A stretch of DNA of 64,000 nt from Octopus sinensis (Eukaryota), in the NCBI RefSeq assembly GCF_006345805.1, contig NC_043018.1:14446001-14510000 (forward strand), in the 5' to 3' direction. A model generated the notes under the pieces. That model searched no databases. It was not told the DNA's origin and saw only the letters and a program-made list of their open reading frames with translations. Each line of letters begins with the position of its first letter. The stretch's first letter is position 1. The position numbers and the translations under genes were made by a program. Positions 1,448-28,261 of the stretch are shown here, in pieces.

Positions 1448-1655
1448 GGTCAAACGTAAGCAGATTGCTACACTTATATGTGTAAATGGACCCTGTAAAC
1501 CAAATAATGCTTGCTGCGGAAACTGGAGATGTCAATGTAACTCTGGCCTGACCTGCTTTTGTGCATCTAAGAATATGAGCCGTGTGACGAATGCCGGTAT
1601 ACTGCAAACTGTAATGGTTTTTCTGATTTTTCTTGTAAATTTACCATCTTATTGA
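1448..1655 (+). CDS. Terminal exon A of knottin/agatoxin-like precursor with GPI-like tail (5' exons outside window)
   Basis: Acceptor ttttttccag|G, phase 2. Translates VKRKQIATLICVNGPCKPNNACCGNWRCQCNSGLTCFCASKNMSRVTNAGILQTVMVFLIFLVNLPSY*. 8 Cys with spacing C-x4-C-x5-CC-x4-CxC-x5-CxC; paralogous to the exons at 11235, 22926, 25353 and 28261. Confidence 0.85.
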
Positions 1656-1866
1656 CGTTCTGCAAAAGTACACTCAACTACAAGAAGAACATCAACAAAG
1701 GGCTGTAACCGATGCTGTTTCAATTCTTGTAACTCTGCTTTGCCTGTTACTACTACTACTACTAATAATAATAATACTACTACTACTACTTCTACTACTA
1801 CTACTACTACTACTACTACTACTACTACTACTACTATTTTATATCCTATAACAATAGAAAACTACG

Positions 1867-1872
1867 AATAAA
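1867..1872 (+). terminator. Poly(A) signal after exon A
   Basis: AATAAA in the conserved ctacgAATAAAtttcatg context about 210 nt after the stop. Confidence 0.6.
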
Positions 1873-2639
1873 TTTCATGGAACACTGAAATATAAAACAT
1901 TAACAAGCAGAAGTCTGATTCTGTAATTTATCCTGGAGAGGAATTCACGTGCGTTGCACCAAGAACTGAAAATAGTAAAACAAGAGAAAATCTGCAAACC
2001 ATAATCTACAACTGTGACTTTTCTTACAAACATAAATTAATACGACGAATACATTTAATATCTAATATATTTATGCTATTAATCCGTCAAATTTTAATGA
2101 AATTCCAATGAAATAAAAATATTAAAGCATCGCAAGTACTTGATGTTTCGTTATTTGCTGTGCTATTTGTTTTAATCTATTGAAACGGTAAGAAAATCTC
2201 AGTGCTTCGTTCTTCGCTGTGGGTTGGCCTTTAAATATGTATATGGATGTTAAGATTTTACATTGCAATGTCACACAATATTATTGTAAAGAAAGAGAGA
2301 GAGAGAGGAGAGAGATGGAGAGGGGAGGGAGCGATGGTCCACATACCCCAGAAATAAACATGTTCTCAGTCGCATCCCGCGGTGATTGGTGAGATGACGT
2401 AGCTGCAGAGAATGGCCAACGACCTTTGTTGCAGCTGCCACGCCACATCCCGTGTTGCACTTGGTTTGATGAGGATTTTTCTGTAATTCCTTGAAAGTTG
2501 GACGACCACGAAGTCTCGTACATTTTCTTGCAATATTGTAGAAAAAATGTCAAATAATGACACCCACACATACATACACTTACACATGTATATATATAAA
2601 TATATATATATATATATATATAGTAGGTGCATTAGGCAT

Positions 2640-2860
2640 AATAAAAAAAATATTCAGACAAATAAATAACAAAACACCAGGACTACAAACACATATAACA
2701 TACAGAAAGTTGCACTACTAGGCACTGCACACATCCTACGCAGAACACTTTCCATACAAAACATCAGAGCATCAAAACAAATCACAGCCACATACCCAAG
2801 GCACACAGAGCTGCACTCGGTAGTGGAGTTAAAATATATGCTTAAAAAATAATATTACTG
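2640..2860 (+). mobile_element. 3' end of R4/Dong-like (RLE) non-LTR element
   Basis: QKVALLGTAHILRRTLSIQ C-terminal motif followed by a (TAA)n tail. Confidence 0.7.
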
Positions 2861-25145: not shown

Positions 25146-25353
25146 TCAATAAGATGGTAAATTTACAAGAAAAATCAGAAAAGCCATTACAGCTTGCAGT
25201 ATACCGGTATTCGTCACATGGATCATAGTCTGAGAATTACAAAAGCAGGTCAGGTCAGTGTTACATTGACATCTCCATTTTCCGCAGCAAGCATTATTTG
25301 GTTTACAGGGTCCATCTACACATATAATTGAAGCAATATGCTGACGTTTGACC
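25146..25353 (-). CDS. Alternative terminal exon D: 8-Cys knottin core plus GPI-like tail
   Basis: ttttttccag|G, phase 2; VKRQHIASIICVDGPCKPNNACCGKWRCQCNTDLTCFCNSQTMIHVTNTGILQAVMAFLIFLVNLPSY*. With exon 2 it creates an R-V-K-R furin-type site. Confidence 0.85.
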
Positions 25354-27755
25354 CTGGAAAAAAATATAGTTGGAAGTTTAAAAAATTAATTAAGTCTTCT
25401 CCTTTAGTGAGAAAGCAAGCAAATTTTAAGAGGAGGGATTAGATGAAGCTCATGTTTTGTTATTATCGACGTCGATTGAAGTATAGATTCTGATGCAATT
25501 TGAACTCATAACAAGCAGAACCGAAATCAGTACCAGTCATATTTTTCTGTTCTTTTAATGATTGCTAAATGTATTTCCTCAAATTTCTCAACTATTAAGA
25601 AAATATGATTAAAAATTCGGATTGTATATGGCGTTGAAAAAATAAAGAATGCGTTGAAGTGTCGCCTGTTGGTAGTCGGAAGTGATGTCCGTGAATACAT
25701 GACTTTAGCCCTGCTTCGTTTAAAATCCTAAACCTGCAACAAAGGACACCAAAAGGGCGACGTGATATTCGAAGCTTGCATCTGACTCAAGATTTCTTGG
25801 AGCATTTGTTGTGCTGCGTGTAGGAGTTTTAGCAGCAACAGCAGCTGCAGTGGAGGTGCAATGGCCCAATGGTTAGGGAAGTGGACTCGCGGCATTGTGA
25901 GTGTTCATTGAGCAAAATCACCTAAGCTCCACGAAGCTCCGGCGGGGAGCGGGGGTGAACCCCGCTGTACTCTTTCACCACAACTTTCTCTCACTCTTTC
26001 TTCCTACTTCTGCCACAAAGCAGGGGAACAATGGTGTAACCCACTATGGTGTGGTAAACTTTCAGACCCTAGTCTAGATTGCGAATCCTCTGTACCCCAG
26101 GATGGTTCAGCTCTCCACCCGTTAAAAGCCACCGTTTACGGAATGAGGATAACAACGTAGCTTTCACGCCCGTGCAACCGCCAGTCTATCGTGCGTGGTG
26201 GGTGGATCTTCAAGTTACCACACGCATTCTTAATAGCTTAGAGTACGGCTCGAATTAGAGATTGTTCTTTGTGGCTAATGGCGTGAGGCCTGATTGGAAG
26301 AAGAAGAAGAAGAAGAAGAAGAAGAAGAAGAAGAAGGCAGCTGCATCAGCAACAACAACAACAACACAGTTTGCTGGAATTATGGTTGAAGAAGTCTGAA
26401 AGTACTCCAGGGTTGTTCATGCCGGACGCCGTTGCGAATTCGATTGGAGTGTTCGTTTATAATTACGAAGGTATTACATTCTCTGCAAATTTTCGATCAC
26501 TTTGCCTTTCATCCTTTCGGGGTCGATAAATGAAGTACCAGTTGCGTACTGAGATCGATCTAATTGACTAACCTCCTGCCCAAACATTTCGGGCCTTGTA
26601 CCAAGAGTCGAAAAGAATATCACTCTGTAGAAGGAAGCAGTTAAGATATCGTAAAATACCGGTGAAAATATATATTTTTTTATTCTTGAAAGGTTTCCGT
26701 CATTTCACTAGCACCAGGTTGAAAGGTTTTAGTCGGAGAAATCGATCCCAGATCTTAGTTGTTGAAGACTAGTACTTATTCTTTCGGACTCTTGTGCTGA
26801 ATCACCATTTACGAGGTCGTACACACACCAACACCGGTTGGCTGTGTAGCAGTGGTGGTGGGGGACAAATTCACACACACACACACACTCACATTGTTGT
26901 ATTATTTTAATTATTTCACTCATTTTGACAGTAGCGACTTTTAATCGAAGAACTCGACCCCTTCACCCATTCTTTGTAAGCCTGGGACTTATTCAATCAG
27001 TCTCTTTACAACACATAGTCATACCTACGCCAATATGTGTATATACATACATACATGCATACATACATACATACATACATACATACATACATACATACAT
27101 ACATACATACGTTTCTGTGTCTGCTTTGGCAGTTATGCAGATAAACGAATTCTATATCCCGAAAAGATTCCAATGAACAATCAAAATGAACATTGCTGCA
27201 TCTCTCCTGAAATAACTACAAAATCGTGGTTGTTTTAGCTGCACTACATCAATAATCTTTGATACTCGTACACTCTTCTTTCCTGTTTCTTTGTATTCAA
27301 TTGTTATAAAATACAACTTGGACAATAATGTTCTTTTACAAATTCATATTGTGATACTGCAATGTAAAATCTTAACATCCATATACATAATTTAAAGGCC
27401 AACATCACAGCGAAAAACGAAGCACTGAGATTTTCTTACCGTTTCAATAGATTAAAAACAAATAGCACAGCGAATAACGAAACACCAAGTACTTGCGATG
27501 CTTTAATATTTTTATTTCAGTGGAATTTCATTAAAATTTGACGGATTAATAGCATAAATATATTAGATATTAAATGTATTCGTCGTATTAATTTCGGTTT
27601 GTTAGAAAAGTCACAGTTGTAAGTTATGGTTTGCAGATTTTCTCTTGTTTTACCATTTTCAGTTCTTGGTGCAACGCACGTGAATTCCTCTCCAGGATAA
27701 ATTACAGAATCAAACTTCTGCTCGTTAATGTTTTATATTTCACTGTTCCATGAAA

Positions 27756-27761
27756 TTTATT
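27756..27761 (-). terminator. Poly(A) signal after exon E
   Basis: Conserved AATAAA context on the minus strand. Confidence 0.6.
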
Positions 27762-28029
27762 CGTTGTTTTCTATTGTTATAGGATATAAAATAGTAGTAG
27801 TAGTAGTAGTAGTAGTAGTAGTAGCAGTAGTAGCAGCAGCTGCAGTAGCAGCAGCAGTAGTAGTAGTAGTAGTTGTAGTAGTAACAACAACAGGTAAAGC
27901 AGAGTTACAAGAATTGACACAGCATCAGTTACAAGAATTGACACAGCATGAGTTACAAGAATTGACACAGCATCAGTTACAACCCCTTGTTGATGTTCTT
28001 CTTGTAGTTGAGTGTACTTTTGCAGAACG

Positions 28030-28261
28030 TCAATAAAATGGTAAATTTACAAGAAAAATCAGAAAAGCCATTACAGTTTGGAGTATACCGGCATTCGTCA
28101 CACGGCTCATATTCTTAGGATTACAATAGCAGAACAGGAAATTGTTACATTCACATTTCCTATCTGGGCAGCAAGGAGGCGGTGGCGAAAAATCCGTCGT
28201 AGTCCCACAGCGTCCCACTGCACATATATTAACAACATCACCAGATCTCTTAATTTTGTCC
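28030..28261 (-). CDS. Alternative terminal exon E (same protein as C)
   Basis: Identical to exon C except for one synonymous change (GCC vs GCT, Ala in NAG); phase-2 acceptor ttttttccag|G. Confidence 0.85.

Follow-up and report, generated by a model that had tools for sequence, protein, structure and literature searches.

A stretch of 64,000 nucleotides from Octopus sinensis (assembly GCF_006345805.1, contig NC_043018.1, positions 14,446,001 to 14,510,000), referred to below as the window and numbered from its first letter, carries genes for small peptides with eight cysteines. It is probably best explained as part of an Octopus-specific tandem gene cluster derived from the CCWamide/agatoxin-like-peptide (ALP) family, in which several terminal exon cassettes with diversifying loops follow one 5' module. 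The anatomy of these genes, their homology and the signature of selection on their loops were shown by the analysis. According to the proposed mechanism, each gene would consist of an exon 1 encoding the signal peptide and ending in phase 1, and a short exon 2 encoding a propeptide and ending in phase 2 within an Arg codon; this 5' module would be followed by one to three tandemly duplicated terminal cassettes. Each cassette would provide a basic cleavage site, an 8-Cys knottin-type domain, a 30-residue hydrophobic tail and its own 3' untranslated region (3'UTR) with polyadenylation signals, and the choice of the cassette spliced to the common 5' module would yield different peptides from one promoter. 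Furthermore, the loops are proposed to be under strong diversifying selection while hardly any change is seen in introns, UTRs and cysteine codons, and cores and tails would be reshuffled through recombination or gene conversion among the cassettes.

The whole window was screened in all six frames for the pattern C-x4-C-x(4-12)-CC-x4-CxC-x(5-6)-CxC. In total, exactly five matches were obtained, namely A at 1479-1562 (+), B at 11263-11361 (+), C at 22788-22889 (-), D at 25239-25322 (-) and E at 28123-28224 (-), which confirms the 8-Cys cores of the initial annotation at the places where it had put them. The five intact cassettes stood, and a sixth, decayed copy (F) and signal peptide and propeptide exons beyond the extent given initially have to be added. 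The cassettes are as follows:

1448..1655 (+): cassette A (alpha), with RVKR, KQIATLI, core CVNGPCKPNNACCGNWRCQCNSGLTCFC, type-1 tail and stop; the 5' exons of its gene lie beyond the window start.
10255..10346 (approximately, +): relic cassette F, reading ...KDNRRCGCCPGYKCSRIENYCLCYKDRR and then a stop codon; only six cysteines are left, the splice phase is wrong and the frame is closed before the tail is reached.
11235..11454 (+): cassette B (beta), with S-NKKKE, AGTT, core CVKLSCNPHGYEPKPPCCDGLKCMCIFVQGCLC, type-2 tail and stop.
22695..22926 (-): cassette C (gamma), with core DNA equal to that of E and a tail showing one synonymous difference from E.
25146..25353 (-): cassette D (alpha), with RVKR, QHIASII, core CVDGPCKPNNACCGKWRCQCNTDLTCFC, type-2 tail and stop.
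28030..28261 (-): cassette E (gamma), a terminal exon with R-DKIKR, SGDVVNI, 8-Cys core, tail NPKNMSRVTNAGILQTVMAFLIFLVNLPFY and stop.

The cores of A-E share the framework C-x4-C-x5/10/11-CC-x4-CxC-x5-CxC and fall into three classes according to the length of loop 2, with 5 residues in alpha (A, D), 10 in beta (B) and 11 in gamma (C, E); the core DNA of C and E shows no differences. These cores had been described as unrelated-looking, but they are homologous codon by codon and make the identical choice between TGT and TGC at all eight Cys positions. Every intact cassette (5/5) starts with a polypyrimidine-CAG acceptor in phase 2, and a basic motif (RVKR, KIKR or KKK) is located between acceptor and core. 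In A-E the core is followed by an in-frame 30-codon tail of the form ..N-x-G-ILQTVM-x-FLIFLVNLP-x-Y-stop and then by a conserved 3'UTR; a 27-nt tail motif occurs five times as compared to zero occurrences expected by chance. AATAAA signals were found about 200-270 nt and 430-515 nt after each cassette stop, for E at +269 and +514. Relic F was recovered by a looser scan and alignment of the units; its tail homolog lies out of frame at 10347-10445, and this relic is an example of neutral cassette decay. Mechanical calling of open reading frames (ORFs) yields only the tail for A and begins within the core for B and E, as had been noted at the first inspection; genes of this kind escape ORF callers, and current gene models cover them only in part. 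The 3'UTR of every cassette also contains a variable-length (ACT)n/(GCT)n microsatellite approximately 100-200 nt past the stop (e.g., 1760-1850, 11550-11640, 27750-27990), and that of cassette E features a 48-nt tandem duplication as well.

For identification of the 5' modules, the window was scanned for signal-peptide-like starts and then compared by BLAST with the exon-1/exon-2 regions. Two modules only were present in the window, one upstream of E/D/C (gene 3) and one upstream of F/B (gene 2):

31537..31600 (-): gene 3 exon 1, with start codon and signal peptide MKGISVLLFCAFISYTFS... (MKGISVLLFC...), ending in ..CAA T|GTAAGT in phase 1.
30523..30583 (-): gene 3 exon 2, 61 nt, encoding the propeptide VSPAHQQTGDHVTLSNVTG, with acceptor TCTCTTTCAG and donor AAG|GTAAGA.
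7165..7227 (+): gene 2 exon 1, encoding the signal peptide MKGISVLLFCVFI... (MKGISVLLFC...).
9052..9100 (+): gene 2 exon 2, 49 nt, encoding the propeptide VAPFHQETSLSEMTE, with entry and exit phases matching those of the family.

Gene 3 exon 1 has its counterpart in exon 1 of the RefSeq paralogs of Octopus bimaculoides and shares its end phase with the first exon of the canonical CCWamide gene. The last two bases of exon 2, AG, begin an Arg codon (phase 2), and the sum of 1 + 61 nt fits the cassette acceptors exactly. The third base of the split codon is supplied by every acceptor (A-E), giving AG|G (Arg) for A, C, D and E (RVKR / RDKIKR) and AG|T (Ser) for B. Joining of gene 3 exons 1-2 to E, D or C in frame results in precursors of 118, 110 and 118 residues, respectively; the output of gene 3 would thus be gamma peptides via E or C and an alpha peptide via D.

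No private exon 1 or exon 2 was detected between E, D and C when the exon-1/exon-2 regions were compared with the window by BLAST. Since a single 5' module precedes several cassettes, these look like alternative terminal exons, and the simplest reading of the sequence would be one promoter and one signal/propeptide module followed by alternative terminal exons. A corresponding layout was found at the O. bimaculoides locus L001, where three cassettes lie downstream of a single exon 1, the middle one being used in the RefSeq model. Moreover, RefSeq isoforms X2 and X3 of O. bimaculoides LOC128250541 have a common N-terminus and different cores. Splicing of cassettes in series into a multi-knottin protein was also considered and rejected, as the candidate donor in the tail is in phase 0 and cassette acceptors expect phase 2. 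Gene 2 exon 1 is one base shorter than its gene 3 counterpart, and exon 2 and hence cassette B are therefore out of frame as assembled; this frame break may mean that the gene is truly a pseudogene, or it may stem from an assembly error (homopolymer). Intron 1 of gene 2 harbors a minisatellite of 45 nt (24.6 copies, 94% match, 7864-8954), which interrupts a sequence that is continuous upstream of exon 2 in gene 3.

Relatives of the family were found exclusively within Octopus. A word-indexed search with the E precursor returned four proteins, all designated 'uncharacterized protein LOC1282505xx [Octopus bimaculoides]', the best of them 56% identical, which have the architecture including the tail in common with the query. 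A HMMER profile search against 1.84 billion representative proteins yielded nine sequences with E <= 0.001, all of them unnamed and from O. bimaculoides or O. vulgaris, in line with the lineage-specificity initially assumed. The protein collection contains no protein that is at least 90% identical to the window precursors. The O. bimaculoides genes are arranged in two clusters on CM046622.1 (~29.15-29.23 Mb and ~36.38-36.41 Mb), and nucleotide identity between the window and the compared Octopus loci, including four from O. bimaculoides, amounts to 80-95%, none being identical; cassette B is nearest to the O. bimaculoides cassettes Ob1 and Ob2. In the literature searched on octopus inhibitor cystine knot (ICK) peptides, molluscan agatoxin-like peptides, octopus CCWamide and salivary cysteine-rich peptides, no published description of the 8-Cys cassette family was found. 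The family was initially called undescribed-looking, which holds in the sense that it is uncharacterised; it was not unseen, as O. bimaculoides RefSeq lists paralogs under the name 'uncharacterized protein LOC...'. The O. vulgaris entry CAI9738754.1, a 273-aa 'hypothetical protein', derives from a model that spans 121 kb with repeated exon-2-like segments and partial cassettes; this model was probably joined in error across a cluster of such genes.

According to Thiel et al. 2021 (PMC8557429), the CCWamides of spiralians and the agatoxin-like peptides of arthropods are orthologous. Hallmarks of the CCWamide/ALP family are a short precursor, eight cysteines and an amidated aromatic C-terminus, and its genes consist of three exons, of which the first encodes the signal peptide and the third the mature 8-Cys peptide; the final intron interrupts the codon of a basic residue in phase 2 (PMC8557429). 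The canonical Octopus vulgaris CCWamide is listed in the supplement of Thiel et al. 2021 (PMC8557429). O. sinensis possesses an identical canonical gene at a locus separate from the cassette family. Exon 1 of this gene ends in ..CGA T|GTAAGT (phase 1), exon 2 comprises 52 nt, and intron 2 splits Arg as CG|A (phase 2). Gene 3 of the window matches the canonical gene in both phases, in the tiny middle exon and in the split Arg codon (AG|G) beside the cleavage site; likewise, it has three exons, the first for the signal peptide and the last for the mature peptide. The order C, C, CC, CxC, CxC follows the cleavage site, and all cysteines are in register with those of CCWamides in the alignment.

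In order to compare both groups at the profile level, 11 family cores were aligned with 18 spiralian CCWamide peptides using hhalign, which resulted in a probability of 95.1%, an E-value of 3.2e-8 and a score of 34.2. Controls preserving the framework (cysteines kept, other ungapped columns permuted, n=100) scored 19.8 +/- 3.5 with a maximum of 27.0; the real score exceeds all of them, and the similarity therefore goes beyond cysteine spacing. The motif CC-x-G-L-x-C-x-C is common to the family and to oyster and nemertean CCWamides. The agatoxin-like framework recognized initially is accordingly corroborated as a relation to CCWamide/ALP by the intron phases and by the profile comparison. Moreover, the next-best proteins retrieved by the family profile after the family itself (E 2.6e-6 and 4.2e-4) are CCW-like and encoded in the same O. 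bimaculoides cluster, where they look like intermediates between the canonical CCWamide and the cassette family. The CCW-like neighbours P0009 and P0010 keep a Trp between Cys6 and Cys7; CCW-like knottin genes with this Trp are located beside the tailed family in locus L003 at ~17880 (-) and 12076 (+) (CM046622.1 ~29.15-29.16 Mb).

Comparison of cassettes revealed that divergence is concentrated in the cores. Between alpha and gamma cassettes, the upstream intron is 96-98% identical, the core 67-69% with an additional 18-nt indel, the tail 89-92% and the 3'UTR 85-95%; for D vs E the values are 98.3% (intron), 69% plus the 18-nt indel (core) and 90% (tail), and the contrast between core and flanks noted initially is thus real. 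The divergent block between D and E extends from the splice acceptor to approximately 40 nt past Cys8. Within the 15 alignable loop codons of this pair, 6/9/2 differences fall on codon positions 1/2/3, and the frequency at positions 1+2 (15/30) differs from that in the intron (6/347) at p = 2.6e-14. The Nei-Gojobori proportions of non-synonymous and synonymous differences (pN and pS), calculated from 15-25 codons per pair, are 0.47 and 0.05 for D-E and 0.45 and 0.10 for Ob1-Ob2 (pooled one-sided Fisher p = 3e-4). Between A and D, all eight differences in pro-region and core (8/8) are non-synonymous, four of them being located in core loops. Across ten cassettes from two genomes, 77/80 Cys codons keep the series TGT TGT TGC TGC TGT TGT TGC TGT. 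At ~0.21 per synonymous site this conservation is near the loop pS of more distant pairs; a special mutational mechanism is not claimed, and the conservation was used solely as evidence of unsaturated synonymous sites. Taken together, low loop pS and conserved Cys codons imply recent common ancestry rather than old divergence, and the strong excess of amino-acid change in the loops implies diversifying selection. As judged from the sequences, this indicates that the loops are subject to diversifying selection with some recombination; the rapid diversification postulated initially is borne out by a loop pN far above pS next to conserved introns and Cys codons.

The C-terminal tail is open over 30 codons in 9/10 cassettes with DNA, and over 28 codons in cassette Ob4. 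Its last 18 residues are uncharged in every standard ..LPxY cassette and in Ob4, and the best 14-residue Kyte-Doolittle hydropathy lies between 1.9 and 2.7 in 11/11 cassettes with the standard tail, including Ob4, the most diverged one, whose tail is open and hydrophobic despite compensating indels. The tail DNA of a CCW-like cluster member with a 119-aa product (locus L003) is unrelated, yet this product also terminates in a 20-residue hydrophobic end. Homology of the two tails was considered and dismissed, as no DNA homology was detectable. These features suggest that an open hydrophobic C-terminus may be kept by selection. The tail had initially been treated as neighbouring DNA of high similarity; the similarity was confirmed, but the tail is in frame and may function as a hydrophobic C-terminal signal. 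Signal peptide, small disulfide domain, polar N/S/G linker and uncharged hydrophobic end represent the layout of glycosylphosphatidylinositol (GPI)-anchored proteins, with the N/S in KNMS, or NxG, as candidate omega sites read by eye. Products therefore appear more likely to remain attached to the membrane through a GPI-type or hydrophobic anchor than to be released.

The fold was modeled with AlphaFold2. For the whole last-exon product, the predicted local distance difference test (pLDDT) score was 56.6; the model showed a hairpin and, in the tail, a long helix, and was not used for claims on the fold. For the B core, modeled with a 16-sequence alignment, pLDDT was 71.3 and a C-terminal beta-hairpin was predicted at 30-35/39-44. 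When the B-core model was compared with PDB structures by Foldseek, none of the matches reached significance (best E 0.43); nearly all leading matches were ICK peptides, with TM-scores of 0.5-0.6 and root-mean-square deviations of 2.2-2.8 A over ~38 residues, namely atracotoxin, psalmotoxin, delta-paluIT1, mu-/omega-agatoxins, agouti-signalling protein and tachystatin. A knottin (ICK) fold with the pairs C1-C4, C2-C5, C3-C8 and C6-C7, as expected initially, is weakly supported by the predicted hairpin and the ICK-type best matches.

Several results weigh against the proposed reading. The tail shows a pN/pS of ~1 and is conserved as DNA more than as protein; its translation could therefore be incidental, or the tail may be spliced out. 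A donor-like ACT|GTAATG is conserved within the tail coding sequence (e.g., 1605-1613 (+); 28074-28082 (-)). The structure model is moderately confident and its structural matches are not significant, while the dN/dS estimates come from 15-25 codons per pair. The Pfam threshold for PF02819 (Toxin_9), 21.3 bits, was not reached by the family, for which the best scores were 11.7-14.4 bits. Alternative use of cassettes is proposed from gene layout and from RefSeq models. Finally, no match to the family was obtained among Logan-assembly proteins of public sequencing runs, in which the canonical CCWamide has one transcript-like contig; this weakly suggests low or restricted expression.

Some of these results would also be accounted for if the products were ordinary soluble secreted peptides, either venom or saliva toxins or neuropeptide-like hormones, and the tail were a C-terminal propeptide or spliced out, with no anchor involved. 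RefSeq isoform X2 of LOC128250541 departs from the genomic read-through exactly at ACT|GTAATG (locus L005, 17930, -), and a hydrophilic end replaces the hydrophobic one. This departure suggests that the hydrophobic end may optionally be removed; as the isoform apparently uses the conserved donor, a soluble variant is possible. Tail pN/pS of about 1 and diversifying selection, which is typical of venom peptides, point in the same direction, and the CCWamide/ALP relatives are soluble and amidated (PMC8557429). However, a basic cleavage site between Cys8 and the tail is absent in most cassettes, hydrophobic C-termini recur in diverged and even unrelated tails of the cluster, and such peptides are unmentioned in the octopus venom literature examined. 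Soluble secreted peptides are therefore a possible but doubtful explanation, and membrane attachment appears more likely.

The contrast between cores and flanks might also be attributed mainly to gene conversion, which would have homogenised introns, tails and UTRs among old, divergent cassettes whose cores are not fast-evolving. Recombination between cassettes has indeed occurred. Two tail haplotypes (type 1, ..KNMSRVTNAG.., and type 2, ..SQTMIH-x-TNTG..), which differ at five linked sites, are distributed independently of core class, the pairs being alpha-type 1 (A), alpha-type 2 (D), gamma-type 1 (C, E) and beta-type 2 (B), and all four combinations of alpha/non-alpha with tail 1/2 occur. 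In addition, tree topology shifts along the unit, D being nearest to E in the intron and nearest to A in the core. Old cores, however, predict diverged synonymous sites, whereas loop pS between alpha and gamma is 0.05, about the intron level, and all eight Cys codons are identical. Conversion is real, but the excess of amino-acid changes still has to be explained, so conversion as the main cause is unlikely, and diversifying selection on recently duplicated cores is retained.

Membership in the CCWamide/ALP family was also examined with regard to features that the cassettes lack. A C-terminal aromatic-Gly-basic amidation motif is absent; every cassette runs 30 codons past Cys8. Between Cys6 and Cys7, where an aromatic residue is described as 'often' present in CCWamide/ALP, Phe was found in beta (IFVQG) and gamma (NNFLF) and no aromatic residue in alpha (NSGLT, NTDLT). 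Toxin_9 matches 15/18 CCWamides at E <= 1, mostly below the cut-off, with a best E-value of 2.3e-6. Single-sequence Pfam scans of the family produced sub-threshold toxin/knottin matches only (weak Toxin_7, Toxin_9 and Toxin_35), and sequence searches of PDB chains with the gamma and alpha cores revealed nothing significant (potato carboxypeptidase inhibitor, E 0.03; mu-agatoxin, E 4.7). An independent, convergent knottin family resembling CCWamide/ALP through cysteine spacing only would be compatible with the missing amide motif, with the lack of any match above a Pfam toxin or knottin threshold or of significant PDB sequence matches, and with the very different size of the chromosome that carries the canonical CCWamide gene, albeit in the assembly of another species. 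It is nevertheless very unlikely in view of the agreement of the two introns in position and phase, down to the split Arg codon, the profile score above that of framework-preserving controls and the CCW-like intermediates with Trp between Cys6 and Cys7 in the same cluster. Based on the missing amide motif, the sub-threshold Toxin_9 scores and the separate canonical locus, the family was filed as a divergent Octopus-specific offshoot of CCWamide/ALP. The assumption that the downstream cassettes (D, C, and also A and B) are dead duplicates or pseudo-exons varying by neutral decay draws on the single 5' module for three cassettes, the out-of-frame exon 1 of gene 2, the clearly decayed F and the lack of transcript-derived proteins, but is the least probable alternative, since A-E all keep eight cysteines, intact acceptor, right phase, open frame and polyA signals, and their substitutions are biased to codon positions 1 and 2 with no loss of Cys or gain of stops, unlike the decay seen in F.

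Intact frames, conserved cysteines and a pN well above pS argue that the peptides are made and matter. Products are expected to enter the secretory pathway and to be cut at the basic site, and as disulfide knots they may bind as ligands to a variable target, for instance an ion channel or receptor, or block it. The best guess is a secreted-pathway, disulfide-knotted ligand for a rapidly changing or diverse target; venom, defence, neural modulation and surface recognition are all candidate roles. A more speculative and rather improbable proposal is that an orphan CCWamide/ALP was turned into a GPI-anchored knottin repertoire, diversified by positive selection on the loops and by alternative terminal exons under one promoter, representing a hypervariable cell-surface 'tethered toxin' system and not a venom. 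If this were true, possible roles of the tethered knottins would be contact chemosensation, discrimination of self from non-self, or cell-autonomous modulation of channels and receptors. The CCWamide/ALP family occurs widely in protostomes, with no receptor or function known (PMC8557429, PMC13311285), and a multiplied, diversifying lineage of it provides many natural variants to screen, which could help to find the target. Furthermore, knottin-type families are unreported for cephalopods in the literature searched; if so, this family would be the first one, with conotoxin-like hyperdiversification. One signal/propeptide module combined with several hydrophobic-tailed terminal cassettes is unusual for small disulfide-rich peptides, and this architecture suggests a compact multi-peptide gene or a membrane-tethered toxin-like ligand.

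With regard to known systems, the family resembles CCWamide/ALP in its short precursor, signal peptide, non-conserved propeptide, basic site and C-terminal C..C..CC-x4-CxC-x5-8-CxC. It differs from CCWamide/ALP in that the aromatic-Gly amidation motif is replaced by the 30-residue hydrophobic tail, and the Trp between Cys6 and Cys7 has been lost. Loop 1 comprises x4 in the cassette family and x6 in canonical molluscan CCWamides, a few non-molluscan CCWamides also having x4. Moreover, CCWamide is a single, highly conserved gene, whereas the cassette family is multi-copy, tandemly arranged and hypervariable in its loops, with several terminal cassettes per 5' module. In decapods, ALP genes are known to give rise to alternative transcripts (PMC4888303).

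The mode of evolution is similar to that of conotoxins, with conserved signal region and introns, hypervariable mature exon, position-specific Cys codons and tandem duplication. Conserved flanks around a hypervariable mature exon are a typical, long-known pattern of conotoxin genes. Signal sequences and frameworks are unrelated, however, and conotoxins have neither a hydrophobic C-terminal tail nor multi-cassette terminal exons; no search gave evidence of conotoxin homology, and a profile including the signal region found Octopus proteins only. Spider ICK toxins (mu-/omega-agatoxins, psalmotoxin, atracotoxins) are similar in cysteine spacing and in the predicted beta-hairpin core, without a significant match, and spider agatoxins are connected with the family only by way of the ALP/CCWamide neuropeptide lineage. 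In the GPI-anchored Ly6/uPAR prototoxins such as lynx1, a signal peptide precedes a small toxin-like domain rich in disulfides, after which come a short polar linker and a hydrophobic C-terminus free of charges. The cassette precursors have a similar layout; this is an analogy only, as the folds differ (three-finger vs knottin), there is no homology, and GPI attachment is putative for the cassette products.

The window as a whole is AT-rich (~37% GC) and contains many microsatellites, repeats resembling short interspersed nuclear elements and retroelement fragments, which marks it as eukaryotic DNA. A fragment of a long terminal repeat retroelement, located 1.2 kb upstream of gene 3 exon 1, includes an ORF of 418 aa (32842-34098, -) with a zinc knuckle and a retroviral-type aspartyl protease (Pfam zf-CCHC, gag-asp_proteas, RVP). 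A large inverted repeat (34346-35921 / 40751-42329) has arms totalling ~1.5 kb with 96-98% complementarity that are ~4.8 kb apart; a palindromic duplication and a transposon bounded by long terminal inverted repeats are both possible. Immediately beyond the 3' region of cassette A, a tract of ~1.5 kb (2829-4340) consists of trinucleotide and low-complexity repeats, which give rise to poly-His/Tyr/Ile ORFs on both strands. Finally, an interstitial telomere-like (CCCTAA)n sequence was observed at 9560-9591, with three overlapping 12-mers as compared to zero expected by chance.

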